Below, one piece after another: positions 4,274-64,000 of a stretch of DNA of 64,000 bases (positions within the stretch are counted from its first letter, which is position 1; every line of letters begins with the position of its first letter). The notes beneath the pieces were generated by a model. That model was not told where the DNA came from. It ran no database searches and saw only the letters and a list, made by a program, of their open reading frames with translations. The position numbers and the translations under genes were made by a program. Location: positions 1 to 64,000 of the IMG/VR virus record IMGVR_UViG_3300043436_004687. One strand, written 5' to 3'.

Positions 4274-5602
4274 TTAATTTGATAAGGGAGTTTTTATAGC
4301 AGAATGAGATTGATAATTTTCTAATTTAAAATCACTAGGGGTACAAGATTCTAATAACTCATCAATAGTTCCATCAAACTTTATATTATCATTAAATCTT
4401 AATGTTGGTAGAGGAAATGGTTGTCTATGAGTTCTTAGTTTAATAATTTGTTTATCTCTAATTTGACCCGCCTTTTTATAATCCTTATCTTTAAGTAATT
4501 TATTTTTTTCTTCTTCTAATTCTAAATCAATTCCTAAATGTTCATTTACTGCATCAATTTGATTATCATAAATATGACAATCACCTATATTACCAATCAA
4601 GTCTTCTGGAATCATATTACACATCTTACCTAAGATGCATAATAAGGCACCATAAGATGCTATATTGAAGGGAATGCCAAGTGGGAAATCTGCTGATCTT
4701 TGATTCCATAATAATGAGATTGTTCGTTTAGGGACATTAATATCCTTTTCATTCATTAAATCTTCAAAGAATAAATCACCATCAGATAATTTATAGCCAT
4801 TTTCACTAACGGTGTCATTATCATAATGAGGGTGATGGTATTTTTCAGAATTATCAAAATAAAATTCTCTTCTTTCTTCCAAACTTAACTCTCTTGTATA
4901 AATTTGAAAATCAGTATGACATGGTGGTAATATAGCATCATCAATTTCACTAGGATTCCAAGCTGTTACCTTAAGCCTCCTTGAATCTGGGTTTGCTTTA
5001 ATTTCGTTGATTAAATCTTGAATTTGATCTATTGGGTATTGTTCTATTATTTGAGAAACATCATTTTCATAATTATATTTCCTCCAACCTCTCCATTGAG
5101 CACCATATATCCTACCAAGATTTCCCCATTTATTAGAAAATTCATCATCAGTTTTTATTTTGTTGATAAATTCTTCTTCTGTATAAGGTCTAAATTCACC
5201 TTTAGAAATAGTTCCACTAACAGTTCCATAAATATCTATTGATTTTGAATCAAATCCTTTAATAGTTATTACTCCATTCCCTCTACATTGAAAATTGTCA
5301 AAAGATAAATCTTTGGTTTGATTAAAATACTTCTTATAAGCATCCCCCACCCAAATAAAACAATTGTTATCAACCAAATATTTTAAATCAGTTCTACCAC
5401 TTAAAAACCAATGTAATTCGGTCATAATAGTCTTGAAACCCATTTTTTTTGTGGTTAAAATTGGAAATTTACCATCTTTAAATTTATATCTAATAGTTCT
5501 ACCAAATAAACTTCTTACACCACCATTTCTAGTTTCTTTCTTATGACCATTATCTAAAATATCTCTTAATATTTCTAAATAATCTTTATCTAATTTATTC
5601 AT
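4274..5602 (-). CDS. thyA: Thymidylate synthase with insertions
   Basis: ETRNGG, FPILTTKK, WNP..LPPCH, QRSADFPLGIPFNIASY, GDCHIY motifs. Confidence 0.97.
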   Translation of the reverse strand: MNKLDKDYLEILRDILDNGHKKETRNGGVRSLFGRTIRYKFKDGKFPILTTKKMGFKTIMTELHWFLSGRTDLKYLVDNNCFIWVGDAYKKYFNQTKDLSFDNFQCRGNGVITIKGFDSKSIDIYGTVSGTISKGEFRPYTEEEFINKIKTDDEFSNKWGNLGRIYGAQWRGWRKYNYENDVSQIIEQYPIDQIQDLINEIKANPDSRRLKVTAWNPSEIDDAILPPCHTDFQIYTRELSLEERREFYFDNSEKYHHPHYDNDTVSENGYKLSDGDLFFEDLMNEKDINVPKRTISLLWNQRSADFPLGIPFNIASYGALLCILGKMCNMIPEDLIGNIGDCHIYDNQIDAVNEHLGIDLELEEEKNKLLKDKDYKKAGQIRDKQIIKLRTHRQPFPLPTLRFNDNIKFDGTIDELLESCTPSDFKLENYQSHSAIKTPLSN

Positions 5603-17349: not shown

Positions 17350-18390
17350 TTAGCTGGTTTTTTTTAGTTTTTTTGCATCAGCAGTTTTTTTTGTTTCTTC
17401 TTTAAGAGCTTTTTCGATAATCGCTCTTTGTTCTTTAGCATTAGATTCATCAGCCAAAACATAACTTTCTTCAACATCAAAATTTAAATTATCGATATCT
17501 TCATTAGAATTAATATCAACCCAAATATTCTTTTTTGAATCCAATGGGTCCATAACTAATTCAACTGTTAACGACTTAATTTTAGCATATGCTGTTGCTC
17601 TATCAATACGAATTTGTAACATTCGTTTAAGTGTTTCTTTAATAAGAAATACAATTTGTTCATTGGTAAGTTTTAACCCATATTCAGCAACATCAATCAC
17701 TGAAGTTTTTAATGTATAATAACCCAACTCACCATCAAAATTTGGTAGGGTATGTATCAAAAACGTTTTTAATATTTCATAATCATCGGAATTAAATGAA
17801 TATCTATCAAAAATTGGATCACCACTTAAAAATTCTAATGATTGGAGATTAATAAAACCTTCAGCGATGTATGTAATATCACCAATAGTTTCCTTATTGA
17901 ATATGGTGGTATCTGATTTATCAGAATCATCACCAACTTTTTTCCCACCACTTCTAGAATAAAATTCCATATATGATTCACTATTATTTGTTTGAATAGC
18001 TGATGTAATTGTCAATGGACTTTTTCGTTTAAGTGTTTCTTTTTTTCCAGCAAACATGTATCCTCTAACAAGACCCATTGTACTTCCAATAAATGAATTT
18101 AAAAGAGATTTGTGGTGAGTTATTGATGGATTAGTAGCAATCGCATCTCCTTTAAAAATAGCATTTCTAAGAGCATCAGATGATATTTTAATTTTATAAC
18201 CCAAAACCCCATCTTCTCTTCTAAAATAATACTTCTTAGCATACATATTATTGTTATCACCAGAAGTAAATTTATTTTTATTCCCTTCTTTACTTTCTCT
18301 ATTCCAAAGATATTTTTGATCACCTGAATCATAATTTACAATTCCATTACCTTCTAATTCAATTTTAAAATTTACATGTTTTACTTTCAT
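17350..18390 (-). CDS. cas7: Cas7 backbone subunit, Cas7fv (type I-F2)-like
   Basis: VNFKIELEGNGIVNY, GLVRGY..KRKSPL, FNKETIGDITYIAEG, LEFLSGDPIFDR match my recollection of Cas7fv motifs. Confidence 0.82.
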   Translation of the reverse strand: MKVKHVNFKIELEGNGIVNYDSGDQKYLWNRESKEGNKNKFTSGDNNNMYAKKYYFRREDGVLGYKIKISSDALRNAIFKGDAIATNPSITHHKSLLNSFIGSTMGLVRGYMFAGKKETLKRKSPLTITSAIQTNNSESYMEFYSRSGGKKVGDDSDKSDTTIFNKETIGDITYIAEGFINLQSLEFLSGDPIFDRYSFNSDDYEILKTFLIHTLPNFDGELGYYTLKTSVIDVAEYGLKLTNEQIVFLIKETLKRMLQIRIDRATAYAKIKSLTVELVMDPLDSKKNIWVDINSNEDIDNLNFDVEESYVLADESNAKEQRAIIEKALKEETKKTADAKKLKKTS

Positions 18391-18418
18391 TTTTTATTTA
18401 TTAAGTTATTTATTGGTG

Positions 18419-18455
18419 CAAATATATGTTTTAATTCTTTTAATATACAAAGATA
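18419..18455 (-). promoter_or_regulatory. Two Bacteroidota-type -7 boxes (TAnnTTTG) ahead of cas7-cas5-cas6
   Basis: caaatata 18419-18426 and caaagata 18448-18455 on + (TATATTTG, TATCTTTG on -). Confidence 0.6.
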
Positions 18456-18457
18456 AT

Positions 18458-20692
18458 TTAATTATTTTTTACAACACCTAATTCATCATCATAATATCTA
18501 TCATAAACAATATATGGGGTATTCGATTTTTTAGCCATTTTTCTAATGGTATCAATAGTTTTATACTTCTTATCATCAATAATGTCATTATATTCAAAAA
18601 GTTGATTATTTGAATTTCTAATTTTTTCCATAGTTTTAAACATTCTATTTAATGTTTTTGAGTTCTCATTAAATTCTACATCAAAACCATTTAATATTTG
18701 TTTATTAAATGGACCAACCCAATCTTTACCATTTTTATGTTGAACAATATAAAATATTTCATTATTAATACTTCTTAATTTATTTGAACCAGCTGTTAAG
18801 ACATTTTTATTTCTCTTGTTATTAAATTTTATTGGGTAAATATTTGATAATCTAATTTTACTTATATCAAAACTAGTAGTAACAAATTGTTTAATTGCTT
18901 TATCATTTAATTTATTGAAATTGTTATAAATAACATAGATTTCATTTAATGTTAATTTTTTATTATTATAGGGTAATAAAAATTCAAACCAACTATCAGA
19001 TAAATTTCTTGTGTATAATAAATTTTTTATCGTTGACTGTGAACTAATATATTTTTTATTGATATCACCATTAGGTATTTCTTTTATTATTGTAATTTCC
19101 GAGTCTCCAATACTATTACCAAATCTATCACATCTACCTATTCTTTGTAGTGTTGACTGTGGGGAGAGTACATCTTCAAATAAATTTTTAAAACTTATAT
19201 CTAACGAAGCTTGTAAAATATGAGTACCAATTATATTAGGTTTAATTTCAGAAATTAATGACTTTTTCCCATACATTTCAACTAATTGATTAAAATCCTC
19301 ATCTTTTTTTTCTTTGATAAACTCATTATGTAATAATAAATCATATTTACCTTTTAATTTTTCTTCTTGTGCTGAAGAAATTGTGTTTTTAACTACTAAT
19401 GAATTACTATTAAATTTTATGTTTGGTCTTTTATTAAGTAGTTTAATTAAATATTTTTTATCATGAATTGCATTATAATGTGATTCATGATTTGGTAATA
19501 TAGTTGTTTGATTATTTAAAGAATCCCACAAAAATTCACAACTAATTTGAGTTGCCGATAATAACAATGTTTTACTTTTTGTTAATCTATGCCTTACTCT
19601 CATTATATTAACAAATAGTGACATAAAAGCAGCTTCACTTATTAATTCATGATATTCATCAAAAACTACATTACAACCAAAAATTAAACTGGACGAATCC
19701 ATAATTTCATTTTTAAATGATGGTGCTAAAAAATTATCAATATTTGTTATAATAATATCAGAATCAAATATCTTTCTTGAATCAGCATTTGTTTTCTCAA
19801 TATCACCACCAAGAATTAATTGAACCGAAGGAGAAATAGATAAACTTTCTATTTCTTCTAATACTGAATTAAAAACTGATTCTGCTACTGCATTTCTAGG
19901 GGTTACCCAAACCAATTTTTTATTATTTTTTAAACCCCATAATAAACCCATTATAGTTTTACCAAAACCAGCGGGTGCTTTTATTATTGTAGTTTTATCT
20001 GTCTGTTTTATTATATTTTTCTGTTCCTCATATCTAACTGTATTATCATATTTACAATTAGTAATTATATGTTTATTTTGCGTTGACATATATTGCTCAA
20101 TTAAAGTAGGAGAAACTTCTGTTAACTCATTTAAATTTGAAGAGATTCTATCAGCAGTAATCACTATTGATCTTAAAAAAATTAAATATTCTAATGATTT
20201 ATCATTCTTAGGATAAAATAATGGTGTTGTAACTGAATCAAAATATTCTATATTTTCATTTACATTTTCAACACCAACTATTTCAATTAAAAAATTTAAC
20301 ATATTATTTATTGAGATATCATCTAATAAATTTAAAATTTCAATATCAGTATGTTTTTCAATTTGGTTTGAAATTCCATGATGCCAATAAACAATATTTA
20401 AAATCATTGATTTATTTGGAAATTCATCTTTTAAATATTTAGATAAAAAAGCCCACCCTATTTCATTATGTCTAAATTTTAAATTTGGTTTTTTGTTACT
20501 GTTTAAAAGTTCTTGAAATTTAGTGGTTCCTTTACCTATGTCATGTAATAAAGATGAAAACTTTATTATTTCATTAAATCTATTAACAATATCACCATTA
20601 CTCATTTTATCAAATAATAATTGAGCCGTTTTAGATACTATTAATGAATGAGTCATTAAAATTAACCCATTACTTTTAGCTATTATTTTCAT
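18458..20692 (-). CDS. cas3: Cas3 HD nuclease-SF2 helicase, no Cas2 fusion
   Basis: THS, LLHDIGK, RHN, WHHG, TAD (HD); APAGFGKT, FDEYHE, SAT, QRIGRCDR (helicase). Confidence 0.96.
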   Translation of the reverse strand: MKIIAKSNGLILMTHSLIVSKTAQLLFDKMSNGDIVNRFNEIIKFSSLLHDIGKGTTKFQELLNSNKKPNLKFRHNEIGWAFLSKYLKDEFPNKSMILNIVYWHHGISNQIEKHTDIEILNLLDDISINNMLNFLIEIVGVENVNENIEYFDSVTTPLFYPKNDKSLEYLIFLRSIVITADRISSNLNELTEVSPTLIEQYMSTQNKHIITNCKYDNTVRYEEQKNIIKQTDKTTIIKAPAGFGKTIMGLLWGLKNNKKLVWVTPRNAVAESVFNSVLEEIESLSISPSVQLILGGDIEKTNADSRKIFDSDIIITNIDNFLAPSFKNEIMDSSSLIFGCNVVFDEYHELISEAAFMSLFVNIMRVRHRLTKSKTLLLSATQISCEFLWDSLNNQTTILPNHESHYNAIHDKKYLIKLLNKRPNIKFNSNSLVVKNTISSAQEEKLKGKYDLLLHNEFIKEKKDEDFNQLVEMYGKKSLISEIKPNIIGTHILQASLDISFKNLFEDVLSPQSTLQRIGRCDRFGNSIGDSEITIIKEIPNGDINKKYISSQSTIKNLLYTRNLSDSWFEFLLPYNNKKLTLNEIYVIYNNFNKLNDKAIKQFVTTSFDISKIRLSNIYPIKFNNKRNKNVLTAGSNKLRSINNEIFYIVQHKNGKDWVGPFNKQILNGFDVEFNENSKTLNRMFKTMEKIRNSNNQLFEYNDIIDDKKYKTIDTIRKMAKKSNTPYIVYDRYYDDELGVVKNN

Positions 20693-20905
20693 CACCATTT
20701 AATTTTTAAATTAATAAAAGGCAAGTTAAATATATCTGAAACATTGAAGTCAATTATCACAAACATAATTAACCAAATTAATGAAAACCAAAAAGATAAA
20801 TATATTGAAAAGAATATATCTGTTTCTTTATACCCATAGATTTTAAAAATTAATAAAACACCAATAACCCAAAACAATAAATCTAATAAATGAAATTCCA
20901 TAATT

Positions 20906-39030: not shown

Positions 39031-39932
39031 TGGATAATTTTACAATTTATAGTATTAGTAGTGAGGGTGAAATTTTTTATATTGGTAGGACTTGTGATTT
39101 AAAACGTAGAAAAAACGAACACATGTCTGAAAATAAAGGAAACACTTATAAGTCAAATAAAATAAAAAAGTTAAGAAGAGAAAATAAAGAAATTAATTTT
39201 AATATTTTACATGAAAATCTTACATATGAACAATCAATTGAATTAGAAATAAAGGAAATTAAAGAACATAAAGAAAAAGGTTATATACTAGCTAATTTAA
39301 CTGATGGTGGAGAAGGAACTTTTGGTCATAAACCTATATTTACTGATGAATGGAAAAATAATCTTAAAATGGCTAGAAAACTCTTATTTAATGATGGTTA
39401 TGAAGTTGCCAATAAAGGTAAAACATTAGAGGAATTAATTGGAAAAGAAAAAGCTAAAGAACAGAAAGAACGTATTGGTAAAAAGATTAGTGATGGAATA
39501 AAATCTGGATTAATAAAACATAATAAAGGAAAAAAGTTAGAAGAATTAGTAGGTATTGATAGAGCAACTGAACTAAAAGAAGAAATTAGGGTTAGAGCTA
39601 AAAATACCTTTACTGGGATAAAACAAAATAATAGCCACATTAATAAACGTATTAGTAAACAAATTGAAACTAAATCTAATTGGTCAATTGAAAAACGTGA
39701 AGAAATTAGACAGGCTAATAAATTAAATGGTGCTAAAGCACATAAAAATTATAACTTTATTGTTGATGGGTTTAATCATTATGGTACTTGGAAAAGTTTA
39801 TCTCCAGCACTAAGAGAAGAACAAGGAATAATAGTTAGTCCCGATTCATTAAGTCAATTTTATAGAGGAAAAATTAAAACCTTAAAATGTGGAATTAAAA
39901 CAATTAAAATTCAACCTCTATTAAATGACTAA
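39030..39932 (+). CDS. GIY-YIG endonuclease, antisense insertion overlapping the PARP 3' end
   Basis: IYSISSEGEIFYIGRT..RRKNEH; LANLTDGGEG; repeated NKGK.LEEL.G. Confidence 0.85.
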   Translation: MDNFTIYSISSEGEIFYIGRTCDLKRRKNEHMSENKGNTYKSNKIKKLRRENKEINFNILHENLTYEQSIELEIKEIKEHKEKGYILANLTDGGEGTFGHKPIFTDEWKNNLKMARKLLFNDGYEVANKGKTLEELIGKEKAKEQKERIGKKISDGIKSGLIKHNKGKKLEELVGIDRATELKEEIRVRAKNTFTGIKQNNSHINKRISKQIETKSNWSIEKREEIRQANKLNGAKAHKNYNFIVDGFNHYGTWKSLSPALREEQGIIVSPDSLSQFYRGKIKTLKCGIKTIKIQPLLND

Positions 39933-41175
39933 TAGTCGTTTGTTGTGATTTATATATAATATACTCATCTTTTCGTAAATCAATACCTTTATGAGCATGA
40001 ACACTATCATAACCACCAGCTTCAACTTCTTTACTAATTTTATAACATGACGAATCATGTTTATATTTATTTAATTGTTTACCAACATGAACATCAAATA
40101 ATCCCAAAAATACTTTATTATTTCTAGAACCACCTGCCCACCTACCACCATCAGTATAACCTAACGATTTATCTGAATCTGATGCAAAATAAATCCCATC
40201 ATCCCACATACTACCAGTATGAATTGCCCCAGAAGGTCTGATTAATAACCCAGTTTGTAAGATATTGAACCAATTTTGGTTTCTAGAACCATGCCAATAA
40301 AGTCTTCTTTTCTTAACTTTAGCTAATTCAAAATTATTATCAAATATTCTTTGTGTTTTCTTATTAATCACTTTGAATACTTTTCTAATTTGATGAGCAT
40401 TATGACCCATAAGTTTTTTAATTAAATCCAATTTTTCATTGTCAGTTTCAATCTCAACTTTTAAACCTAATTGATCTAATATGGTTAAATCTTGTTTTAT
40501 ATCTTCACTATTATTTGAATCTTCTTTTTGTTTTTTCAATAATTGAACTTGACCCGCCATTACATCTAGGGTTTCTTGCTCGCTATTAATAAATTCTTTA
40601 GCTTTTTCTAAATCTTGTTTATTATTAATAGGTTTTAATAAATAATCCTTTACATCTTTCATGTTTCTAGGGATTATTGTATATAATTTCAATAACAATT
40701 CATTTAAAACTTTAACATCTGATTTTAAATTTAAAGTACTAGAAATTTGATTTAATATTTCTTGAGCAGAATTAATTTGTAATTCAGTTACCGAACTTTG
40801 AGTTACCTTATAATTCTTTTGGATAGATTTATTAGCATAGGCCATTAAATCATCAATAAGTTGTTTAACTACTTTATCTTCAATTTCTTTTATGGTTGAA
40901 CTAGAAGCGTTGTCTATTTCAGTTTCAATGAACATTTCGGTAACATCGGTATAACCCTTAGTTTTAGAAATTTTTTGTTTATAAACAGAATTCCATTTTG
41001 AAATATCTTTATATTCTGTTGCTAAATTATTACCAACTCTACCATATTGACACTTAATTTTACCATCACTTTGTTCCTCCATAATGTAAACCTTATTGGA
41101 ATTTGACGTTAAACCATTGTCGATTGATACATGAATTAATTTAGCATAACGTAAACCATTCTCCTTTATAATCAT
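39904..41175 (-). CDS. PARP-like ADP-ribosyltransferase (WGR, regulatory, catalytic domains)
   Basis: WGR-like NKVYIM..QYGRVG; LYTIIP; WHGSR..ILQTGL; GIYFA; DEYIIY (H-Y-E triad). Confidence 0.88.
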   Translation of the reverse strand: MIIKENGLRYAKLIHVSIDNGLTSNSNKVYIMEEQSDGKIKCQYGRVGNNLATEYKDISKWNSVYKQKISKTKGYTDVTEMFIETEIDNASSSTIKEIEDKVVKQLIDDLMAYANKSIQKNYKVTQSSVTELQINSAQEILNQISSTLNLKSDVKVLNELLLKLYTIIPRNMKDVKDYLLKPINNKQDLEKAKEFINSEQETLDVMAGQVQLLKKQKEDSNNSEDIKQDLTILDQLGLKVEIETDNEKLDLIKKLMGHNAHQIRKVFKVINKKTQRIFDNNFELAKVKKRRLYWHGSRNQNWFNILQTGLLIRPSGAIHTGSMWDDGIYFASDSDKSLGYTDGGRWAGGSRNNKVFLGLFDVHVGKQLNKYKHDSSCYKISKEVEAGGYDSVHAHKGIDLRKDEYIIYKSQQTTISHLIEVEF

Positions 41176-49796: not shown

Positions 49797-50208
49797 TTTA
49801 TATATTTTAACACCAACGCATCATTTTATTACAATTAGGGCATTTTAAGTAATGATAAGTATCAGTACCCCCACCATAAGGTTCATTTTCCACTTTTTTG
49901 TCTACTTCATTCTCAAAATATTCTATTACTGCACCACAAGATGAATGAGTTCTTTGTTTAGCTTTTGATTTATCAATTTTTAAAACTTTTGCCATAATAC
50001 TTTGTTTTTAATTTATTGCAAATATAAGATTTTATATGCAAACTTCCAAATTATATTTTATTTATCTGAACCATAAATTAAAAGTTTATTGCATCACCTT
50101 AATGCTTTAGGGTTAATTACACACCAACCCCTTAGCCATTTAAGGGGTTGCTACCACTTCTTTATTTTTAATTTATTTATCATTTTATTTATTTTATTTG
50201 TTTTATTG

Positions 50209-50284
50209 TCGGGATAGCAGGGATCGAACCTGCGTGAATGTCCTACTCCCAAAGTAGGCGACTTACCAATTAGTCCATATCCCG
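50209..50284 (-). tRNA. tRNA-Pro(TGG)
   Basis: CGGGATA/TATCCCG acceptor; CCTAC-TTTGGGA-GTAGG; T-loop TTCGATC. Confidence 0.95.
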
Positions 50285-50292
50285 TGTTATTG

Positions 50293-50375
50293 TGGTGAGA
50301 TGAGGACTCGAACCTCTCCATTTTAATGACTAGATTTACAGTCTAGCTGCCATATCCAAATGACTTTATCGCACC
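50293..50375 (-). tRNA. tRNA-Tyr(GTA)
   Basis: CTAGA-CTGTAAA-TCTAG; long variable arm; T-loop TTCGAGT. Confidence 0.92.
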
Positions 50376-50388
50376 AATTTAATATAAT

Positions 50389-50428
50389 AAAAAAAACCCA
50401 GTTTAGATTTTTAATTCTAACTGGGTTT
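50389..50428 (-). terminator. Attenuator terminator A (upstream of tRNA-Tyr/Pro)
   Basis: AAACCCAGTTAGA/TCTAAACTGGGTTT stem plus U-run. Confidence 0.85.
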
Positions 50429-50465
50429 ATATTTTGTGGTTATAATTAACCAAAACTTAATATAT

Positions 50466-50558
50466 TTATGTGAAAATTTTTCCCATACCCAGTTTACCAT
50501 AAGGTCTATAACCTTTAGGTGTTTGCTGTTTTTGTTGATATGTGAAATTTGTATTCAT
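50466..50558 (-). CDS. Leader peptide A, MNTNFTYQQKQQTPKGYRPYGKLGMGKIFT
   Basis: 30 codons; 3 Tyr, 2 Pro, 4 Gln; contains antiterminator AAACTGGGT (50487-50495). Confidence 0.75.
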   Translation of the reverse strand: MNTNFTYQQKQQTPKGYRPYGKLGMGKIFT

Positions 50559-50640
50559 AGTTTTTATTTTTAATAAAATTTAGCGTGGTTTATTCAAAAC
50601 TCAAGGTTTATTGTATTTAACTCACAAATTTATAATCTCC

Positions 50641-50753
50641 TAATTTTATTGTTATTAATATATATATTGCAAATATAAGACAAAGTTTTATAATATACAA
50701 GCTTTTTTTAATTTATTTTTAAATTATTTTATAACTAATTGATAATCAAGTTA
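50641..50753 (-). repeat. Promoter block (TTG-N20-TATATTTG) repeated at 61201-61312
   Basis: About 110 nt near-identical to 61201-61312; both blocks precede leader-attenuator-tRNA units. Confidence 0.85.
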
Positions 50754-51126
50754 ATTAATTTTTCTTTTCCTTAAAATTTTTTCAGTAATTTTACCACCAT
50801 TTAAAATTTTCATCTTGGTGATTAATAAATTATTCAGATGTTGATATAAGGTGTCTTCTAATTCTAATTTTTCTTTTAATGAAATTAAACGATTTTTAGA
50901 TTCTAAATAGAGTAAATTAGATATGTGTTTTTTAAATTCACTATCTTCAACATTTTCCAATTTTTTAATAAGATTTGAATATGAAAAAATTAATTTAGAG
51001 ATTGGTTTAATTAAACTTTTATTTTCATTTAATTTATCCACAATATAAGGAAGCATAGAAAGAGTATTTCTATCTCCAAAGGTACCAGTTTCAATTAATT
51101 TAATTTTCATCTTAATATTATATTAG

Positions 51127-57264: not shown

Positions 57265-58338
57265 TTATTTTAAATTATTTTTATAATTATTAATCTCACT
57301 AATTAAATTTTCTTTTATTTCAAGTGGAGCTTTCTTTTTATTACCCTTAGTCTGAAATTGTAATAACCTATAATTACCACCATCAATACCTAATTCAAAT
57401 GTGCCCCTAATTTTTAATTCTAAATTATGATATTTATAAATTAAACTTTGCCCATATTTACATTTTTCCCAATAACCAGACCCACCAACACAATGTCTCA
57501 TTTCTTGCCCCTCATAAACCAACCCAAATTTTGAAGTTAATAATGTAGAATGATTAAATGTTGGATAATCCACGTTCGGATCTAAAAATTCATTTTCCTC
57601 AGATAAAAGCTTTTTTTCTCTAATTTGATGTGACCAATTATCGTGTTCTAACTTAATCCTTTTAAGACTCCATTTCATATTTACTTTATAACCTAAATTA
57701 GGTGCATCAATAAACATATCCACAAGATTCATTTTCTTTAATTTGTGAATATGTTTAAAAAACATTGTTTTATCTAAACAATGGTTTAGATAATAGTATA
57801 TTGGTTGGTAACGAGAAACTTTATTTTGCCAATGAATTACCTTAACACTAAGACAATTTTTGAAAGCAGACATTGGAAAATTTTCAAGTGGGACTTGGTT
57901 ATTTATTAAATTTAATTTTATAATATCTGTAGGTGTAGTATATTTTTTAAATACACAATCCAAAAATACTTTAAAATCTAATTTGATATAGTGATTAACA
58001 TCATTAATACATTCATCCAACAAAAATTCTAATCCTAAATAATTTAATAACTTAGAATCTTTCCAACAACCATAAAAATTAATAAAATTTGTTAATTTTT
58101 TATTAATCAAATCAACCTCAAACAAACCTAACGTTATAAAATTACTTTCAGAAAAATTATATAAAGAAAAATTTAATCTTCTATATTCAACATATATTCT
58201 AGTCTCATTTTTCTCAATATAATAAAAATAACAGCCACCAGTATCGTAATCACTATCATTTTTAAATTTTAACCTAATGCTTTTTAATTGATTTTTTTTA
58301 CTATAATTTTTAGCAAAAATTCTAAAACCTTTTTTCAT
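57265..58338 (-). CDS. PcfJ-like domain protein
   Basis: LVYEGQEMRHCVGG..SLIYKY..TFEL..LLQFQTKGN. Confidence 0.7.
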   Translation of the reverse strand: MKKGFRIFAKNYSKKNQLKSIRLKFKNDSDYDTGGCYFYYIEKNETRIYVEYRRLNFSLYNFSESNFITLGLFEVDLINKKLTNFINFYGCWKDSKLLNYLGLEFLLDECINDVNHYIKLDFKVFLDCVFKKYTTPTDIIKLNLINNQVPLENFPMSAFKNCLSVKVIHWQNKVSRYQPIYYYLNHCLDKTMFFKHIHKLKKMNLVDMFIDAPNLGYKVNMKWSLKRIKLEHDNWSHQIREKKLLSEENEFLDPNVDYPTFNHSTLLTSKFGLVYEGQEMRHCVGGSGYWEKCKYGQSLIYKYHNLELKIRGTFELGIDGGNYRLLQFQTKGNKKKAPLEIKENLISEINNYKNNLK

Positions 58339-59122
58339 TAATTTCTATTAAAGGGTTATACAAATTTTCTAAAGCTATTACTAATTTTTGTAAGTCTCCC
58401 TTATAAAATCCACTACAATTAATACAATTTATTTCAACCATTTTCCAACCATCTGGTGTTAAGCAAATATCCATCACAAAACATTCAGCTACTTGGTATA
58501 AGTCAACCATTTTTTGAGCAAATTCTAAACCCTCTGGTTCAACATTTTCTTCATAAGCAACATATTGGCCAAATCTATAATATGAACTAGTGACTATCTT
58601 ACCACCAACAATCCAAATTCTAGCTTCCTTATATATTGTTTTAGGTTTACCAATTTGAATTAACTGAGGTTCTACTAATTTAGTATAATTAACATTTAAT
58701 TTACGTTGTTCAATTAAATCATCCCATTTAGTTTTGGTAAATAATTGACCATTAAATAACTTAGAATCTTTACAAGGTCTTATGAATTTAGTTTCATTGT
58801 AATCCCATTCTATAGGGTCAAGAAATTCTTTAATCTCACTATCATAATTTAAAAGATTTTCTTTATAAAATTTAGAATAAATTGAATAATCATGATTCCC
58901 ACCAAAGAATGAACCAGGATACCAATCTTTTTCAGCAGCTAATTTTGCCATTCTAATTGAACCGAATGTGAATACATCTTTACGTTTAGTTTTTACTTGA
59001 AAATCATCGGAATTAGGTAAACAAGTGATAACCTCAAACTCCAAATTTAATTTAGTTAAAGTGTCAAATATAAGATTATAATTTACTTCCCTGAAAACAT
59101 TTTCTTGGATTACGTAGTACAT
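58322..59122 (-). CDS. ATP-grasp domain protein (DUF4343/R2K-like)
   Basis: FIRPCKDSKLFNG, EARIWIV, FVMDI..WKMVEIN..SGFY. Confidence 0.75.
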   Translation of the reverse strand: MYYVIQENVFREVNYNLIFDTLTKLNLEFEVITCLPNSDDFQVKTKRKDVFTFGSIRMAKLAAEKDWYPGSFFGGNHDYSIYSKFYKENLLNYDSEIKEFLDPIEWDYNETKFIRPCKDSKLFNGQLFTKTKWDDLIEQRKLNVNYTKLVEPQLIQIGKPKTIYKEARIWIVGGKIVTSSYYRFGQYVAYEENVEPEGLEFAQKMVDLYQVAECFVMDICLTPDGWKMVEINCINCSGFYKGDLQKLVIALENLYNPLIEINEKRF

Positions 59123-59685
59123 ACTTTATAAGTTGAGTTTGTTTTTTTAATTTTATTTATTTCTTCAGTTTCATCTAAAATATATTCCTCAAATTCATTA
59201 TGATTTAGTAAAAGTTTTTCATTTTCTTCCAACTCAAACATTTTTATTAAATTTTCATAATGGCGTGAATTATCTATAGGTTCGACCAAATCTAAATGAA
59301 TTTTAATACTTCCAGTAAACAAATCATCCAGTTGTTGACGAAGTTGCTTATCAGCCTCTATCTTATAGAGTTTAACTGCTTCTTGATACTCATCCTTATG
59401 TTTTTGATAATTCTCTTTTATTTTTGAAATTATATTTTCTTTGCTAATTGTAGTTTTCATAATTAATCATTTATTTAGTGCAAAGATAGTAATTAAAAAT
59501 TAATTGAACAAATTTATTTTTCTAAAAGTTCAATTATTTTTTTCTTGAAGTCTAAAATAACTTCATTGGCACTTTCCTCATCAAAAGTCGAAGTTATTAA
59601 TGAAATTAATTCTGAATCATCAAATATAAACTGTAGTTCTAGTAATTTTTTTTCTAATGTCATTTTAAATTAATTTATTTATTTG

Positions 59686-59757
59686 TACTCCCGAAGGGAA
59701 TCGAACCCTCCTTCCCAGGCTGAAAACCTGATGTCCTAACCGATAGACGACAGGAGC
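59686..59757 (-). tRNA. tRNA-Glu(TTC)
   Basis: GCTCCTG/CGGGAGT; TCAGG-TTTTCAG-CCTGG; T-loop TTCGATT. Confidence 0.95.
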
Positions 59758-59766
59758 ATAAAAATT

Positions 59767-59880
59767 AATCAAAAAGTCTTCGTCTCTCCTAGCTGGCCCA
59801 CTTGAGGATAAATCCTCGTGCCCGACTCGAACGGGAATGCTAGCGACTCAATCCAGCTTGCCATTTTCATGGTTTTGATT
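59767..59880 (-). ncRNA. GC-rich structured RNA with a T-loop, between tRNA-Asp and tRNA-Glu
   Basis: AATCAAAA/TTTTTGATT closure, AGCTGG/CCAGCT, CCCG-TTCGAGT-CGGG, GAGGA-TTTA-TCCTC. Confidence 0.6.
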
Positions 59881-59886
59881 AATTTA

Positions 59887-59961
59887 TGGCGGTCCTAGAG
59901 GGAATCGAACCCTCATCATGCCCGTGACAGGGGCGTATCCTAGCCATTGAACGATAGGACC
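59887..59961 (-). tRNA. tRNA-Asp(GTC), CCA encoded
   Basis: GGTCCTA/TAGGACC+G+CCA; GCCC-CTGTCAC-GGGC. Confidence 0.96.
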
Positions 59962-59963
59962 TT

Positions 59964-60797
59964 TTATTTTAACCATTTTCTTATAGCATTATCACTAACA
60001 CCATATTTCCTACCAGTTGCAGAATAACCTAATTGATCAACTTCTTTTAATAAAATCTCTTTACTAGGTCTATCTTTAACTTTTCTTAATTTAGTTGAAC
60101 TTTCGATTTGTTTATTAGTCCTCGCATTATTAATTAATTTTTCAGAATTTAATAATATTTTATCTTCATTTAATTTTTCAATCTTAACATATTTTATTTT
60201 TAATCTATTATGACCAATACAATGAGTTTTTGTTTGACTATGACAATTTGGGCATAAATATCTTAAATTTTCCAACCTATTATCACTATTATCACCATTA
60301 ATATGATCAATTTCTAATTTAATTTTATTTCCACACCAAATATCTATTATGCTACAATTTATATTACTACATTTATAAGATAATAATTTATCTTGAATAA
60401 TTCTTTTCTTTACTACATTTTTACTAACACTAGAATTTAAAATAAATATTTCATTATTAGTTAATATTCTACTGTATTTATTACCTCTATTATATTTATA
60501 TTTTAATATTGAAACATCAATTCCATATAACAAACAATATTTATCTAATGTTTGAAAATTCCCAGATTTTAATGTTATATTTAAATTTCTTAATACATCC
60601 GATTTACATTCTGATTTAGATATTGCATTAAGTAAATTTTCTTTAGTCCAATTATGTGTTCTTTTATAACCACTAGTATTTAAACCAAATTTTGTTAAAT
60701 TATATCTTATTTTACCCTCACTAACCTCAAAAAAGTTACTTAATTTTTTAATTGTATAACCCTCTTTAATTTTTTCTTTTAAAATTTCTATATCCAT
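59964..60797 (-). CDS. HNH homing endonuclease within a tRNA operon
   Basis: LEIDHINGDNSDNRLENLRYLCPNCHSQT; HTH-like ends. Confidence 0.9.
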   Translation of the reverse strand: MDIEILKEKIKEGYTIKKLSNFFEVSEGKIRYNLTKFGLNTSGYKRTHNWTKENLLNAISKSECKSDVLRNLNITLKSGNFQTLDKYCLLYGIDVSILKYKYNRGNKYSRILTNNEIFILNSSVSKNVVKKRIIQDKLLSYKCSNINCSIIDIWCGNKIKLEIDHINGDNSDNRLENLRYLCPNCHSQTKTHCIGHNRLKIKYVKIEKLNEDKILLNSEKLINNARTNKQIESSTKLRKVKDRPSKEILLKEVDQLGYSATGRKYGVSDNAIRKWLK

Positions 60798-60889
60798 ATC
60801 TTTTATTATAAATATAGAAACTTTAAAAAAAGTAAACTAAGTAAAGATAATAATTTAAATAACCCTATTATTACATAATTTACACTAAG

Positions 60890-60962
60890 TGAGTTCTATG
60901 GTATTCGAAACTATTCCCAATGCTCTTCAGGCATTTGTGCGCACCAGCTACACCAAAAACTC
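60890..60962 (-). tRNA. tRNA-Phe(GAA)
   Basis: GAGTTTT/AGAACTC; AATGC-CTGAAGA-GCATT. Confidence 0.9.
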
Positions 60963-60968
60963 TTTTTG

Positions 60969-61042
60969 TGGAGGATAACAAGATTCGAACTGTTGACCCC
61001 TTGCGTGCAAGGCAAGTGCTCTACCAACTAAGCTAATCCCCC
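60969..61042 (-). tRNA. tRNA-Ala(TGC)
   Basis: G3-U70 identity pair; CTTGC-CTTGCAC-GCAAG. Confidence 0.95.
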
Positions 61043-61051
61043 ATTTTATTC

Positions 61052-61088
61052 AAAAAAAAAAACTCAACCTAATTAAAAGTTGAGTTTT
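61052..61088 (-). terminator. Attenuator terminator B
   Basis: AAAACTCAACTT/AGGTTGAGTTTT stem plus long U-run. Confidence 0.88.
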
Positions 61089-61110
61089 ATAATTTATAAA
61101 TGTTTTACAT

Positions 61111-61200
61111 TTAACTAAATTCCATACTCAACTTACCAAAGCCATAATCTTCAGCTATTGCTTCAAAAGCAAAATCAAATATGTTATTAAGTGTTTTCAT
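61111..61200 (-). CDS. Leader peptide B, MKTLNNIFDFAFEAIAEDYGFGKLSMEFS
   Basis: 29 codons; F/D/A/E are 11 of codons 8-21; antiterminator AAGTTGAGT at 61126-61134. Confidence 0.8.
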   Translation of the reverse strand: MKTLNNIFDFAFEAIAEDYGFGKLSMEFS

Positions 61201-61309
61201 AGTTTTTATTGTTATTAATATATAGTGCAAATATAAGATAAAGTTTTATAATATGCAAGTTTTTTTTAATTTATTTTTTAAATTATTTTATAACTAATTG
61301 ATAACCAAG

Positions 61310-61525
61310 TTACTTTTTACGCATTTTAGCTTGAAAAGTTTCCAATTTTTTAATCATTTGACCATCTGTTTTATCAAATACTGACCAAATTCCAGAGACC
61401 ATTGCCATAAGGGCACCACTAAGAGTTAAAAATGTTGCGGAATCTAAAACACCATAAGTTGTTAAAAATACACCAAGTGCTGTAAGCACATATCTAATTA
61501 TCGATAAAATTTGTTCTTTGTTCAT
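61310..61525 (-). CDS. Putative holin (two TM helices, basic C-terminus)
   Basis: EQILSIIRYVLTALGVFL..SGIWSVFDK, resembling Pam3-gp28-type holins. Confidence 0.6.
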   Translation of the reverse strand: MNKEQILSIIRYVLTALGVFLTTYGVLDSATFLTLSGALMAMVSGIWSVFDKTDGQMIKKLETFQAKMRKK

Positions 61526-61578
61526 ATTTAAATAGTTTATTAATAAATATATTTAAAAAATTAAAAAATTATTTTATT

Positions 61579-61650
61579 TGGTAGTGAAGGTGGGATTCGA
61601 ACCCACAAACTCCCTGTTTCTAAGACAGAATACTCTACCGCTTCTTAAAT
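61579..61650 (-). pseudogene. 3' part of a tRNA (TAG anticodon, short variable loop, CCA) whose 5' acceptor strand lies at 63081-63087
   Basis: GCGGTAGAGT, TCTGT-CTTAGAA-ACAGG, GTGGG-TTCGAAT-CCCAC, CTTCACT-A-CCA; complementary GGTGAAG only beyond the tnpB element. Confidence 0.7.
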
Positions 61651-61751
61651 AATATACATTTCTGTACATAACTCAATTCCTAATTCAACAAATAAACTAA
61701 TGTTCATTCTCCAAAGGCTTATATTCCCCATTGCGGATGGGTATATTATTT

Positions 61752-62894
61752 TTATTTTAATCCTAATAACCTAATTCCTTCATTCTTTATATTGATAGCT
61801 GCATTCAAATCCCTATTAATACTCAAATTACATTCACTACAATTATATAACCTATGTTTCAATTCTAAATCTATTTTTTTATTCCCACAACAACTACATA
61901 ATTTACTACTAGCAAACCATCTATCAATATCAACTAAATCCCTACCATACCATTCAGATTTATATTTAAGTATATTCTTAAATCTATTTAAACTCAATTC
62001 TTGTATAGATTTAGCTAATTTATGATTCTTCATCATACCACTTACATTTAAATTTTCAATTACTATAACTTGGTTATCATTTAGTAATTTATTTGCTACT
62101 TCATGTAAATAATTTTCTTTTTTATTAGTTAATTTTTCATTAAATTTAGCTAATTTTATTCTAGCTTTTTCTTTATTTTTACTACCATTTTCTTTTTTAC
62201 TTAAATTCTTATGTAATTTAGCTAACTTGTTTTTGTTATTTCTAATTATTTTTAAGTTATCATATTCTACACCATTTGAATCAACTATAAATGTTTTTAT
62301 TCCTAAATCAATTCCTACTATATTATTTTTAGGCGTATCTAATTCTAATAATTCATTTGAATCAACTAATATACTTAAAAAATATTTGTTTGATTTAGTT
62401 TTAGATAGTGTAGCTGATTTAATTCCTTCTTTATATTTGTTAAGATAATTAACATACTTATCTGACGTTCTAAATTTAATATCTTTTAATTGACTTGTAA
62501 GTGTTAACTTATTTGATAAATAATTATTTTTCTTAGATATTGCTTCTAATGGAAATCTACAACTTTGTATATTATCATGTTTTGATTTAAAATTAGGAAA
62601 CCCACTTCCATTTATAAAAAATCGTTTATAGCTATCTAACAAATTAATTACAGATTGTTTCAATACTTTGGTATTATGATTAGTTAACCAAATATAATCT
62701 GAATTTTTAGTTAGAGTTTGATGAAAATAGTTACCCAATTCTTTCAACCCCAAATTGCTTTTATCTTTTAAATAAGATTCTTTTTTAAGGGATAAGCAAT
62801 TATTAAATACGAATCGATAGCTACCAAACAAATCATTTAAATATGATTGTTGTGTAGTATTAGGGTATATACGTATTTTAATTGATTTTAACAT
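61752..62894 (-). mobile_element. tnpB: Solo IS200/IS605-family TnpB (HTH, RuvC, Zn finger) with downstream omegaRNA-like region
   Basis: KIRIYPN, GIDLGIK, VIENLNV, CSCCG..CSEC, RDLNAAINI. Confidence 0.95.
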
Positions 62895-63095
62895 AAAATT
62901 TTATGGGTATATTAATACCCTGTTATTATAAATATAAGAATAAATTTAAAAAGTTCAATATTATTATGTTAAATTTAGTTAAAATTATACATTATGGTTT
63001 TAAATCTATTTAATTGTTTATGTTTGTATAAGATTGTTTAGATAATTAGTTTCTGTTACTAACCCTTCGTTTTAATAGCACTTCACCATATTTTG

Positions 63096-63179
63096 TAACC
63101 CTGACAAGATTCGAACTTGCAACCCATTGAGGGACAGCATTCTAAGTGCTGCGTGTATAGCCATTTCCACCACAGAGCC
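63096..63179 (-). tRNA. tRNA-Leu(TAG)
   Basis: CAGCA-CTTAGAA-TGCTG; long variable arm; GCAAG-TTCGAAT-CTTGT. Confidence 0.92.
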
Positions 63180-63185
63180 TTCCTT

Positions 63186-63485
63186 TTATTTTAACTTAAT
63201 AAAATCTTCTTTTTCAATTGCTTTAGTAATCCATCTTATGAGTTCACTTCCTTTAATTTCACTATGAAACTCAGTTAAACCCAAATCCTCACTTAAAACA
63301 AGTGTATTGAAAGTTTCGGTTTGAAATGAATTGGAAACTTTTTTATGTTCAACTGTTGATATAGGAAATTGGAATGTTCCGTTAGATAAATCTATATTAT
63401 AAAATAACTTTCCATTATAATAATGAGAAAATTTAGCTAATGTTTTTAATTTGTATAATTCTTTTTTTATTTCTGTTGCATTCAT
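63186..63485 (-). CDS. Hypothetical protein inside the tRNA operon
   Basis: 99-aa ORF from the track, A-rich start. Confidence 0.65.
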   Translation of the reverse strand: MNATEIKKELYKLKTLAKFSHYYNGKLFYNIDLSNGTFQFPISTVEHKKVSNSFQTETFNTLVLSEDLGLTEFHSEIKGSELIRWITKAIEKEDFIKLK

Positions 63486-63515
63486 TTTTTTTTATGTATT
63501 TAATTTATTAATTAG

Positions 63516-63601
63516 AACTGGAAGTAGGATTCGAACCTACGGTGCACTTTTCAGTAATTAGGGTTGCAATCTAATGAATTCGACCACTTTTCTATTCCAG
63601 C
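63516..63601 (-). tRNA. tRNA-Cys(GCA) with an unusually long variable arm
   Basis: GCTGGAA/TTCCAGT, U73, loop TTGCAAC, 16-nt variable region, GTAGG-TTCGAAT-CCTAC. Confidence 0.85.
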
Positions 63602-63611
63602 ATTTGTTTAA

Positions 63612-63648
63612 AATAAAAAATCCGATTAAGTTTTAATTAATCGGATTT
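63612..63648 (-). terminator. Attenuator terminator C
   Basis: AAATCCGATTAA/TTAATCGGATTT stem plus U-run. Confidence 0.85.
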
Positions 63649-63670
63649 AAAATTGTTTTATAATTATTTC

Positions 63671-63775
63671 TTAATGAAAATAATTTATTTCAAATTCCGA
63701 TTCTTCCAACCCTAATAGGATCAGTGAAGTTAAACATAAGTTAAGCGCCAATTTGAATTTATTTACTACTTTCAT
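63671..63775 (-). CDS. Leader peptide C, MKVVNKFKLALNLCLTSLILLGLEESEFEINYFH
   Basis: 34 codons; 8 Leu (five different codons) and 1 Cys in codons 9-23; antiterminator AATCGGA at 63696-63702. Confidence 0.75.
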   Translation of the reverse strand: MKVVNKFKLALNLCLTSLILLGLEESEFEINYFH

Positions 63776-64000
63776 ATTTTTAATATTAGTTCTTTATTAA
63801 TATATAGTTTATTTTTCAAAAAAATAAATATTATTTATTAATTTTATTTAAAATTTGTATTGAATTTGATATTGTTGCTTCATTGGTGCTGTTTTCTAAC
63901 AACCAATTAACATAATTTATTAAATCAAATTTATTTATCTCATCAATTTTTTTATAATTATATTTACCACTAATGACATAAAATGTGTTGTTAGCCTTTC

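Follow-up and report, generated by a model that had tools for sequence, protein, structure and literature searches.

How are the tRNA genes of a huge bacteriophage controlled when they lie immediately downstream of a transcription terminator? The question is raised by a tRNA array on the minus strand of the phage sequence studied here, a stretch of 64,000 nt further referred to as the window. A very short open reading frame precedes the terminator, and it is rich in codons read by the tRNAs that follow. The first-pass annotation proposed that this is a leader-peptide attenuator whose codons match four downstream tRNAs (Ala, Phe, Asp and Glu). We analyzed the elements of this unit (unit B), tested the codon match and the alternative RNA structures, and compared the unit with similar ones in the window and in related phages.

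Composition of the unit and alternative structures

All elements of unit B are on the minus strand at the annotated places:

61203..61312 (-): promoter module, about 94% identical to the module in front of a second unit in the window (50655-50760, unit A), with the -33 TTG at 61258-61256 and the -7 box TATATTTG at 61235-61228; the predicted transcription start is near 61223
61111..61200 (-): leader ORF with an ATG start, 29 codons plus TAA; the regulatory zone, codons 8-18 (61179-61147), reads FDFAFEAIAED
61172..61183 (-): segment 1, over codons 7-10
61123..61134 (-): segment 2; positions 61134-61126 are AAGTTGAGT
61097..61113 (-): small 7-bp hairpin starting at the stop codon, between segments 2 and 3
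61048..61088 (-): intrinsic terminator, with the 5' arm (segment 3) at 61088-61077, the loop, the 3' arm (segment 4) at 61070-61059, and the T-run
60968..61042 (-): tRNA-Ala (anticodon tgc)
60889..60962 (-): tRNA-Phe (anticodon gaa)
59964..60797 (-): HNH endonuclease ORF of 277 aa with HNH_3 and HNH Pfam hits, probably a mobile insert within the tRNA array; a degenerate -7-like box lies about 10 nt upstream of its ATG
59887..59961 (-): tRNA-Asp (anticodon gtc)
59758..59886 (-): unidentified GC-rich spacer (42% GC against about 25% for the genome), closed by a 13-nt inverted repeat
59685..59757 (-): tRNA-Glu (anticodon ttc), the last tRNA of the unit

The -7 box conforms to the TAnnTTTG motif of Bacteroidota sigma-A and has TTG 20 nt upstream. 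This two-part motif occurs 24 times on the coding strand, once on the other strand, and 4.4 times on average in shuffled sequences. In contrast, a scan with the sigma-70 consensus was uninformative (51 sites against 42.5 expected). Given the position of the -7 box relative to the start site (PMC9723704), the leader ORF begins 23 nt downstream of the predicted transcription start. The terminator is a 12-bp stem followed by a run of 11 T. Only 9 nt separate the T-run from tRNA-Ala, which leaves no room for a promoter, so that tRNA-Ala and tRNA-Phe must be read through the terminator. A strict terminator scan of the window found only three terminators on this strand, and all three lie directly upstream of tRNA clusters.

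Codons 8-21 of the leader contain four Phe, three Ala, two Asp and two Glu codons, that is, 11 of 14, as the first-pass annotation had counted. Ten of codons 2-20 are readable by the four downstream anticodons, against a background of 0.21 (binomial p=2.4e-3), whereas the other two frames give 1 and 2 hits. None of the 227 other ORFs of 20-45 codons in the window reaches 10. The zone of codons 2-20 was chosen after seeing the data; in whole-ORF tests unit B remains significant.

Segment 2 takes part in two mutually exclusive helices. Its positions 61134-61126 are the exact complement of 61085-77 in the 5' arm of the terminator; only 5 of 2000 shuffles of the upstream sequence give a match this long. 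In the minimum-free-energy fold, segment 2 (61134-61123) pairs with segment 1 (61183-61172) in a 12-bp helix that includes G-U pairs, forming the anti-antiterminator and possibly a pause hairpin. The small hairpin at the stop codon would bring segments 2 and 3 closer together, and equivalent hairpins appear in the other units. This is the 1:2 / 2:3 / 3:4 layout of trp-type attenuators. The competing domains have similar energies, -14.5 (1:2), -14.9 (2:3) and -12.3 kcal/mol (terminator). The antiterminator forms in folds when segment 4 is absent. A simulated ribosome stalled at codon 17 or earlier leaves the full antiterminator able to form, at codon 19 the helix is partial, and from codon 21 onward only the terminator can form.

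One element could not be verified as described. The region 59886-59758 had been annotated as an ncRNA, but an Rfam search at E<=10 gave nothing meaningful, ARAGORN with introns and tmRNA allowed gave nothing, and BLAST against all loci retrieved for comparison found no homologue. The predicted fold is no better than that of shuffled sequence (z-score -0.83).

Comparison with other units

No orthologue of leader B was found. A blastn search of 59400-61600 against GenBank phages gave only tRNA and HNH-tail matches. Exact-pattern scans of IMG/VR with the promoter module found only this contig, and scans with the YG.GKL.M region shared by leaders A and B found only this contig plus three unrelated chance hits. 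The closest relatives by the neighboring ATP-grasp protein (loci L034 and L038, 82% identity; L numbers denote loci retrieved for comparison) have no tRNAs nearby. Hence unit B has no alignment of its own, and covariation for it rests on its paralogue, unit A. Two sister units lie in the window:

50208..50760 (-): unit A, with the same promoter module, leader ORF 50558-50466, terminator 50428-50394, then tRNA-Tyr and tRNA-Pro
63095..63775 (-): unit C, with leader ORF 63775-63671, terminator 63648-63618, tRNA-Cys, a 99-aa ORF, then tRNA-Leu(tag)

Eight more distinct units were found in related huge phages, including GenBank LR756500 and LR756501; the system occurs in the published 462-kb and 735-kb huge phage genomes. 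The leaders are unrelated in sequence, and each is enriched in-frame for the amino acids of its own tRNA array. The counts of cognate codons among the codons counted are as follows:

Unit A: 5/19, p=0.011
Unit C: 4/19, p=0.0025
Lys/His/Ser/Phe/Trp arrays (L002, L004-6, L095): 13-15/19, p from 2e-4 to 9e-7
L068, Pro/His/Gln array: 9 consecutive QPQPQQHPQ codons, p=1.6e-6
L096, Asn/Tyr/Asp/Ser/Thr/Glu array: 13/19, p=6e-3
LR756500, His unit: 17/23, p=3e-7
LR756500, Ala unit: 18/21, p=3e-7
LR756500, Asn unit: 10/22, p=2.6e-3
LR756501: 25/41, p=3e-5

Fisher's combined p over six of these units is 1.4e-14. The LR756500 Lys/Met/Phe unit is not significant on its own (p=0.09). In whole-ORF tests unit C and most relatives stay significant, whereas unit A (p=0.06) and the Ser-less L005 set (p=0.10) do not. 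Ten of 11 leaders score best with their own tRNA set, and 0 of 200,000 random pairings reach the observed total. Leader composition predicts array content. This worked once as a blind test: on a contig that ended after tRNA-Asn, the composition of the leader correctly forecast the array found on a longer contig. It also flags array decay, as leader A keeps Gln and Thr codons but no such tRNAs follow it.

In 9 of the 11 units the leader carries a clear complement of its own terminator arm, and two are weaker; the LR756500 His unit has only a weak antiterminator. The complement is 7-11 nt long and always sits at codons 19-27. Within the Lys/His/Ser/Phe/Trp family the antiterminator helix is 100% paired, with 2 compensatory pairs. 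Between units A and B, the K-L-G/S codons differ at three positions, of which two are synonymous, and all three are compensated in the terminator arms. Some relatives carry a promoter-like box, or a conserved GTTCWTTGAMA motif, between the terminator and the first tRNA; in those phages control may be only partial. More distant, GC-richer relatives (L008/L062, L011/L070, L016/L087, L036 and L077) have tRNA arrays but no recognizable leader-terminator unit, and the design appears restricted to the AT-rich lineage with Bacteroidota-type promoters. The single tRNA-Arg in the window (24359) and its counterpart in LR756500 have no leader and sit directly after long ORFs.

Proposed mechanism and alternative explanations

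Based on sequence evidence alone, we consider it likely that unit B is a ribosome-mediated transcription attenuator gating the array of tRNA-Ala, tRNA-Phe, the HNH insert, tRNA-Asp and tRNA-Glu. This supports the interpretation of the first-pass annotation, although its term "multi-input sensor" is an inference. In the proposed mechanism, host RNA polymerase starts near 61223 and a ribosome begins to translate the leader. If Phe, Asp, Ala and Glu codons are decoded quickly, the ribosome reaches the end of the ORF and covers segment 2; if no ribosome loads, segment 1 pairs with segment 2. In both cases the terminator hairpin forms and transcription stops 9 nt before tRNA-Ala. If the ribosome stalls on any of the ten cognate codons at positions 8-18, it sits on segment 1 and leaves segment 2 free to capture the 5' arm of the terminator, and the polymerase reads through into the tRNA genes. 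Translation of the leader, stalling, read-through and the physiological trigger are inferred. The output tRNAs would relieve the stall, making the circuit a negative-feedback supply control for decoding capacity, to which any one of four amino-acid/tRNA classes could be an input. Leader-peptide attenuation is reported as likely in Flavobacteria (PMC9723704).

The most serious alternative, though still unlikely, concerns the extent of control. The attenuator may govern only tRNA-Ala and tRNA-Phe, while the HNH gene, tRNA-Asp and tRNA-Glu form a separate unit, the Asp and Glu codons of the leader being a relic from before the HNH insertion. Indeed, a degenerate -7-like box (TATATTTA, about 60814-60807) lies 11 nt before the HNH ATG and could drive tRNA-Asp and tRNA-Glu independently, as the first-pass annotation itself cautioned. 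Boxes of this TTTA variant appear to serve as leader promoters in LR756500, and homing endonuclease genes may often carry their own promoter. However, the box lacks both the TTG at -33 and the final G, and the strict motif is absent between 61228 and 59511. In relatives, leaders keep codons for tRNAs that lie beyond ORF inserts 1-3 kb away, and no terminator follows tRNA-Phe.

The remaining explanations seem very unlikely. Small ORFs are abundant in AT-rich DNA (228 ORFs of 20-45 codons in the window) and, taken alone, the p-values for unit B are only about 0.002-0.003, so that an ordinary small gene with its own terminator, followed by tRNAs made from leaky read-through or from another promoter, could be imagined. 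The same coincidence would then have to recur in 11 units with unrelated sequences and different amino-acid sets, and neither the frame specificity of the enrichment, nor the lack of room for a promoter before tRNA-Ala, nor the occurrence of strict terminators on this strand only in front of tRNA clusters agrees with it. Alternative terminator and antiterminator helices are also the core of riboswitches and T-boxes, and no Shine-Dalgarno sequence precedes the ATG, which would suit an untranslated RNA switch responding to a protein or to uncharged tRNA; such sequences, however, seem to be generally lacking in Bacteroidota. No T-box or other Rfam family matches at E<=1 across 58500-64000, the cognate codons are enriched only in the ATG frame, and a single specifier cannot explain leaders that match 4-7 tRNA species. 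Finally, the peptides themselves could be functional products: leader C has a hydrophobic stretch resembling a membrane helix and could be a small membrane peptide, and leaders A and B share the YG.GKL.M motif. Yet the peptides of different units share no sequence while each tracks its own tRNA set, and the shared motif coincides with segment 2, an RNA-level constraint whose synonymous changes are compensated in the terminator.

A more tentative possibility is that these leaders are a codon-by-codon gauge of the decoding capacity of the host, switching on replacement tRNAs exactly when particular host tRNAs become limiting, including the case where host defense nucleases cut them. Under this reading, tRNA arrays in the largest known phages would be demand-driven counter-defense and supply modules. 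Leader composition would co-evolve with array content and provide a readable record of which tRNAs each array is meant to back up.

Relation to known systems

Why phages carry tRNA genes has been debated for decades, and how their expression is controlled is largely unknown. If the leaders work as proposed, tRNA genes could be regulated by the decoding of their own codons, of which our literature searches found no report in cells or viruses, and a single attenuator could integrate several unrelated inputs. Phage tRNA arrays used for codon supply or to replace tRNAs cut by host defenses (PMC10264068, PMC11555353) are likewise clusters often interrupted by homing-endonuclease genes, with a proposed role in keeping translation going in the infected cell. 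These studies concern what the tRNAs do and, as far as their abstracts show, mention no demand-sensing leader upstream of the arrays.

T-box riboswitches are also terminator/antiterminator switches that report on the status of a specific tRNA. A T-box binds one uncharged tRNA directly through a specifier codon, needs no translation, and regulates aaRS and amino-acid genes. The pheST (phenylalanyl-tRNA synthetase) attenuator of E. coli and the predicted attenuators of aaRS operons (Lopatovskaya et al. 2010, cited in PMC4833913) apply leader-peptide attenuation to a component of the translation apparatus and sense decoding of the cognate codon, but they regulate a protein that charges tRNA, have a single amino-acid input, and belong to cellular genes. 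With the leader-peptide attenuators of amino-acid biosynthesis operons (trpL, hisL, pheL, leuL, thrL, ilvL classes) unit B shares a short leader ORF enriched in regulatory codons, the 1:2, 2:3 and 3:4 alternative helices, an intrinsic terminator directly before the regulated genes, and reliance on coupled transcription and translation. It differs from them in being carried by a phage and in regulating tRNA genes and not enzymes, so that the output acts directly on the signal that is sensed. Moreover, the leaders described here mix codons of 2-7 amino acids that share no pathway and are instead defined by whichever tRNAs sit downstream.

Genomic context and elements of unit B

The IMG/VR contig IMGVR_UViG_3300043436_004687 is 339,635 bp long, and its first 64 kb are AT-rich, with almost all genes located on the minus strand. 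The encoded proteins include a Cas3-like HD-helicase (746 aa) and an adjacent DevR/Cas7-like protein (17350-20698, minus strand), a 442-aa thymidylate synthase ThyA (4274-5602), a PARP-domain protein (39904-41175), an R2K ATP-grasp protein (58322-59122, minus strand) and a TnpB. The R2K ATP-grasp gene lies next to tRNA arrays in many related phages (loci L002-L016 and L032-L095), and in one GenBank phage record its homologue is annotated as ribosomal protein S6 glutaminyl transferase; the linkage to the translation-related arrays may be functional. In a tblastn search with the ATP-grasp protein, the nearest GenBank phages were LR756500 (462 kb) and LR756501/LR756503 (735 kb). Judging by accession and size, these are probably huge-phage genomes of Al-Shayeb et al. 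2020. According to that paper, the genomes larger than 634 kb fall in the Mahaphage clade and are predicted to infect Bacteroidetes; attenuation and leaders are not mentioned in it (PMC7162821).

Promoters were searched for using the two-part Bacteroidota sigma-A motif (TTG, 18-21 nt, TAnnTTTG), the motif and its position being as described in PMC9723704. The motif occurs 24 times on the coding strand and once on the other strand, compared to 4.4 times on average in shuffles. Most copies lie 15-40 nt before an ORF.

The elements listed in the first-pass annotation of unit B are present on the minus strand. The element given there as an ncRNA is a GC-rich spacer for which no family could be assigned. 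The order of the elements is as follows.

61203-61312, minus strand: promoter module, with TTG at 61258-61256 and TATATTTG at 61235-61228
61200-61111, minus strand: leader ORF of 29 codons; codons 8-21 hold 4 Phe, 3 Ala, 2 Asp and 2 Glu
61134-61126, minus strand: AAGTTGAGT (segment 2), the exact complement of 61085-61077 in the 5' arm of the terminator
61088-61077 with 61070-61059, minus strand: 12-bp terminator stem, followed by eleven T
Starting 9 nt after the T-run, minus strand: tRNA-Ala, followed by tRNA-Phe, an HNH ORF and tRNA-Asp
59758-59886, minus strand: 129-nt GC-rich spacer, followed by tRNA-Glu

Only 5 of 2000 shuffles give a match as long as that between segment 2 and the 5' arm. 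The spacer between tRNA-Asp and tRNA-Glu has 42% GC in a genome of about 25% GC, is closed by a perfect 13-nt inverted repeat and contains a T-arm-like hairpin. It has no Rfam, ARAGORN or BLAST match, and its fold is no better than that of shuffles.

Codon composition and alternative structures of the leader

The background codon frequencies were calculated from 15,427 codons of long ORFs in the window. Codons readable by the four downstream anticodons have the frequency of 0.21, whereas the leader has 10 of them among codons 2-20 (p=2.4e-3). The other two reading frames of the same DNA have 1 and 2 such codons, and none of the 227 other ATG-ORFs of 20-45 codons in the window reaches 10.

The minimum-free-energy fold of the transcript from about 61223 to 61045 contains two main helices, a 12-bp helix between 61183-61172 (codons 7-10) and 61134-61123, and the terminator. 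The same nine bases of segment 2 can instead pair with the 5' arm of the terminator. The three competing domains are close in energy (-14.5, -14.9 and -12.3 kcal/mol). A stalled ribosome was simulated by masking everything up to 12 nt past the A-site codon. With the stall at codon 17 or earlier, the full 9-bp antiterminator forms before segment 4 (the 3' arm of the terminator) exists, and at codon 19 a shortened 6-bp helix still forms. From codon 21 onward, only the terminator can form. All ten cognate codons of the zone (codons 8-18) fall in the permissive range. This is the layout of a classical trp-type attenuator.

A strict scan of the whole window (stem of 8 or more, 3 or more G-C pairs, T-run) yielded exactly three terminators on the coding strand, each located 16-19 nt (from the stem end to the tRNA start) upstream of a tRNA cluster. 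An ordinary end-of-gene terminator would not be expected only there. Moreover, there is no room for a promoter between these terminators and the first tRNA.

Analogous units in the window and in related phages

The other two terminators belong to two further leader-terminator-tRNA units.

50208-50760, minus strand: unit A, with leader 50558-50466, terminator 50428-50394, tRNA-Tyr and tRNA-Pro
63095-63775, minus strand: unit C, with leader 63775-63671, terminator 63648-63618, tRNA-Cys, an ORF and tRNA-Leu(tag)

Unit A shares with unit B a promoter module of about 120 nt (50655-50760 and 61203-61312, respectively, minus strand) that is about 94% identical and starts right at the stop codon of the upstream gene, while the leaders behind the two copies have diverged almost completely. 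The leader of unit A has three Tyr and two Pro codons (5/19, p=0.011), and its segment 2 is 8 nt long (0 of 2000 shuffles). The homologous K-L-G/S codons that form segment 2 in units A and B differ at three positions. Two of these changes are synonymous, and all three are matched by changes in both terminator arms. Leader A also carries four Gln, three Thr and several Gly codons, although only tRNA-Tyr and tRNA-Pro follow it. It scores best with the Ala/Tyr/Leu/Pro/Gln/Gly/Thr set of LR756500, which suggests that the array has decayed in this phage, having lost members while the leader kept their codons.

Unit C has four cognate codons (CTN or TGT) in 19, against a background of 0.031 (p=0.0025), and its antiterminator is stronger than its terminator. 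A TnpB/IS605-type ORF (61752-62894, minus strand) sits inside unit C and is followed by a weak second tRNA-Leu(tag)-like gene (61660-61579, minus strand; Rfam 31 bits over 61582-61639), found by ARAGORN only at a relaxed threshold. This may be an insertion sequence that landed in the tRNA array.

To find units in related phages, the search was anchored on the neighboring ATP-grasp gene and supplemented with DNA-pattern scans. Analogous units were recovered whose leaders have no sequence similarity to leader B.

Leader-terminator units at loci of related phages (locus; core of the leader; downstream tRNA array; cognate codons; p)
L002, L004, L005, L006, L095; KHS..SKSFKFW; Lys, Phe, Trp, Ser, His; 13-15/19; 2e-4 to 9e-7
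L068; QPQPQQHPQ; Pro, Pro, His, Pro, His, Gln, Gln; 9/19; 1.6e-6
L064; rich in Ser, Tyr, Ile, Thr, Asn, Asp; contig ends after tRNA-Asn; -; -

A longer contig for L064, denoted L096, was retrieved afterwards. It showed Asn, Tyr, Asp, Ser, Thr, Glu and a CAT-anticodon tRNA, which is possibly Ile2, because both Ile codons in the leader are ATA. The composition of the leader had therefore predicted the array.

In a piecewise survey of the complete LR756500 genome, all 26 tRNAs were found within one 58-kb stretch, and leader-terminator units precede four arrays.

Leader-terminator units of LR756500 (array; cognate codons; p)
His/Glu/Val/Trp/Ile/Leu; 17/23; 3e-7
Ala/Tyr/Leu/Pro/Gln/Gly/Thr; 18/21; 3e-7
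Asn/Asp/Arg(tct)/CAT; 10/22; 2.6e-3
Lys/Met/Phe; 6/19; 0.09 (weak)

LR756501 has a unit before an Arg/Pro/Ala/Thr/Val/Gly array (25/41, p=3e-5) with a 10-bp antiterminator. In LR756500, at about 100290-100550 (minus strand; locus L101), an ORF ends in a Ser-rich tail (..SENSSLNSDSSSSLLYS) immediately before two tRNA-Ser genes, with no terminator in between. This may be a different, terminator-less form of coupling between codons and tRNA genes, or it may be chance. ARAGORN also calls tRNAs with a CTA anticodon (labelled Pyl) in related huge phages (position 17166 of L097, a locus of LR756500, and position 140 of L055); these are possible amber-suppressor tRNAs.

In the nine units tested, segment 2 sits at codons 19-27. 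Fisher's combined p over six independent units is 1.4e-14. When leaders and tRNA sets were paired at random across the 11 units, 0 of 200,000 pairings reached the observed total score, and ten of 11 leaders score best with their own set. In the Lys/His/Ser/Phe/Trp family, the antiterminator helix is 100% paired, with two compensatory pairs, whereas sliding the partner strand by one column drops pairing to about 55%.

Proposed mechanism and comparison with known systems

The best explanation of these observations is ribosome-mediated transcription attenuation in which the regulated genes are tRNA genes. Fast decoding of the leader, or no translation at all, would give termination, whereas stalling on cognate codons would give read-through and more of the tRNAs that relieve the stall. 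The parts, their geometry, the alternative pairings, the frame-specific codon match and the recurrence of the design follow from the sequences, while translation of the leader, its coupling to transcription and the stall response are inferred. The physiological trigger is likewise inferred and could be codon-supply mismatch, loss of host tRNA during infection, or tRNA-cleaving host defences, the last being raised by work on phage tRNAs as counter-defence (PMC10264068, PMC11555353). Leader-peptide attenuation has been inferred upstream of amino-acid operons in Flavobacterium (PMC9723704), and hence the host machinery is plausibly able to run such a switch.

No orthologue of unit B was found, so its own helices have no alignment support beyond the paralogue, unit A. 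A degenerate TATATTTA box lies 11 nt before the HNH ATG and could drive tRNA-Asp and tRNA-Glu independently of the attenuator. On the other hand, the strict promoter motif is absent between 61228 and 59511, and in relatives, leaders keep codons for tRNAs that lie beyond ORF inserts. In some relatives, a promoter-like box or a GTTCWTTGAMA motif lies between the terminator and the first tRNA, and there attenuation may add to a basal level of expression. The GTTCWTTGAMA motif was observed 9-30 nt upstream of many tRNA 5' ends (L002:3910, L004:2881, L068:2882, L096:6101, L097:9043 and 40582, L098:8237, and L100 (minus strand), all loci of relatives), both after the attenuator terminator and inside arrays. 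Ten of its 21 occurrences are next to a called tRNA. It could be a promoter element or a processing signal, and it is absent from the three units of the window.

Full-text literature searches, in which many subscription-journal papers were not covered so that an earlier report cannot be excluded, revealed no description of leader-peptide attenuators upstream of tRNA genes in cells or phages. The element gave no T-box match in an Rfam scan. It satisfies every structural criterion of the trp/his/phe class of attenuators that could be tested, and differs from it in three ways, namely, in what it regulates, in its composite codon content and in its viral origin.
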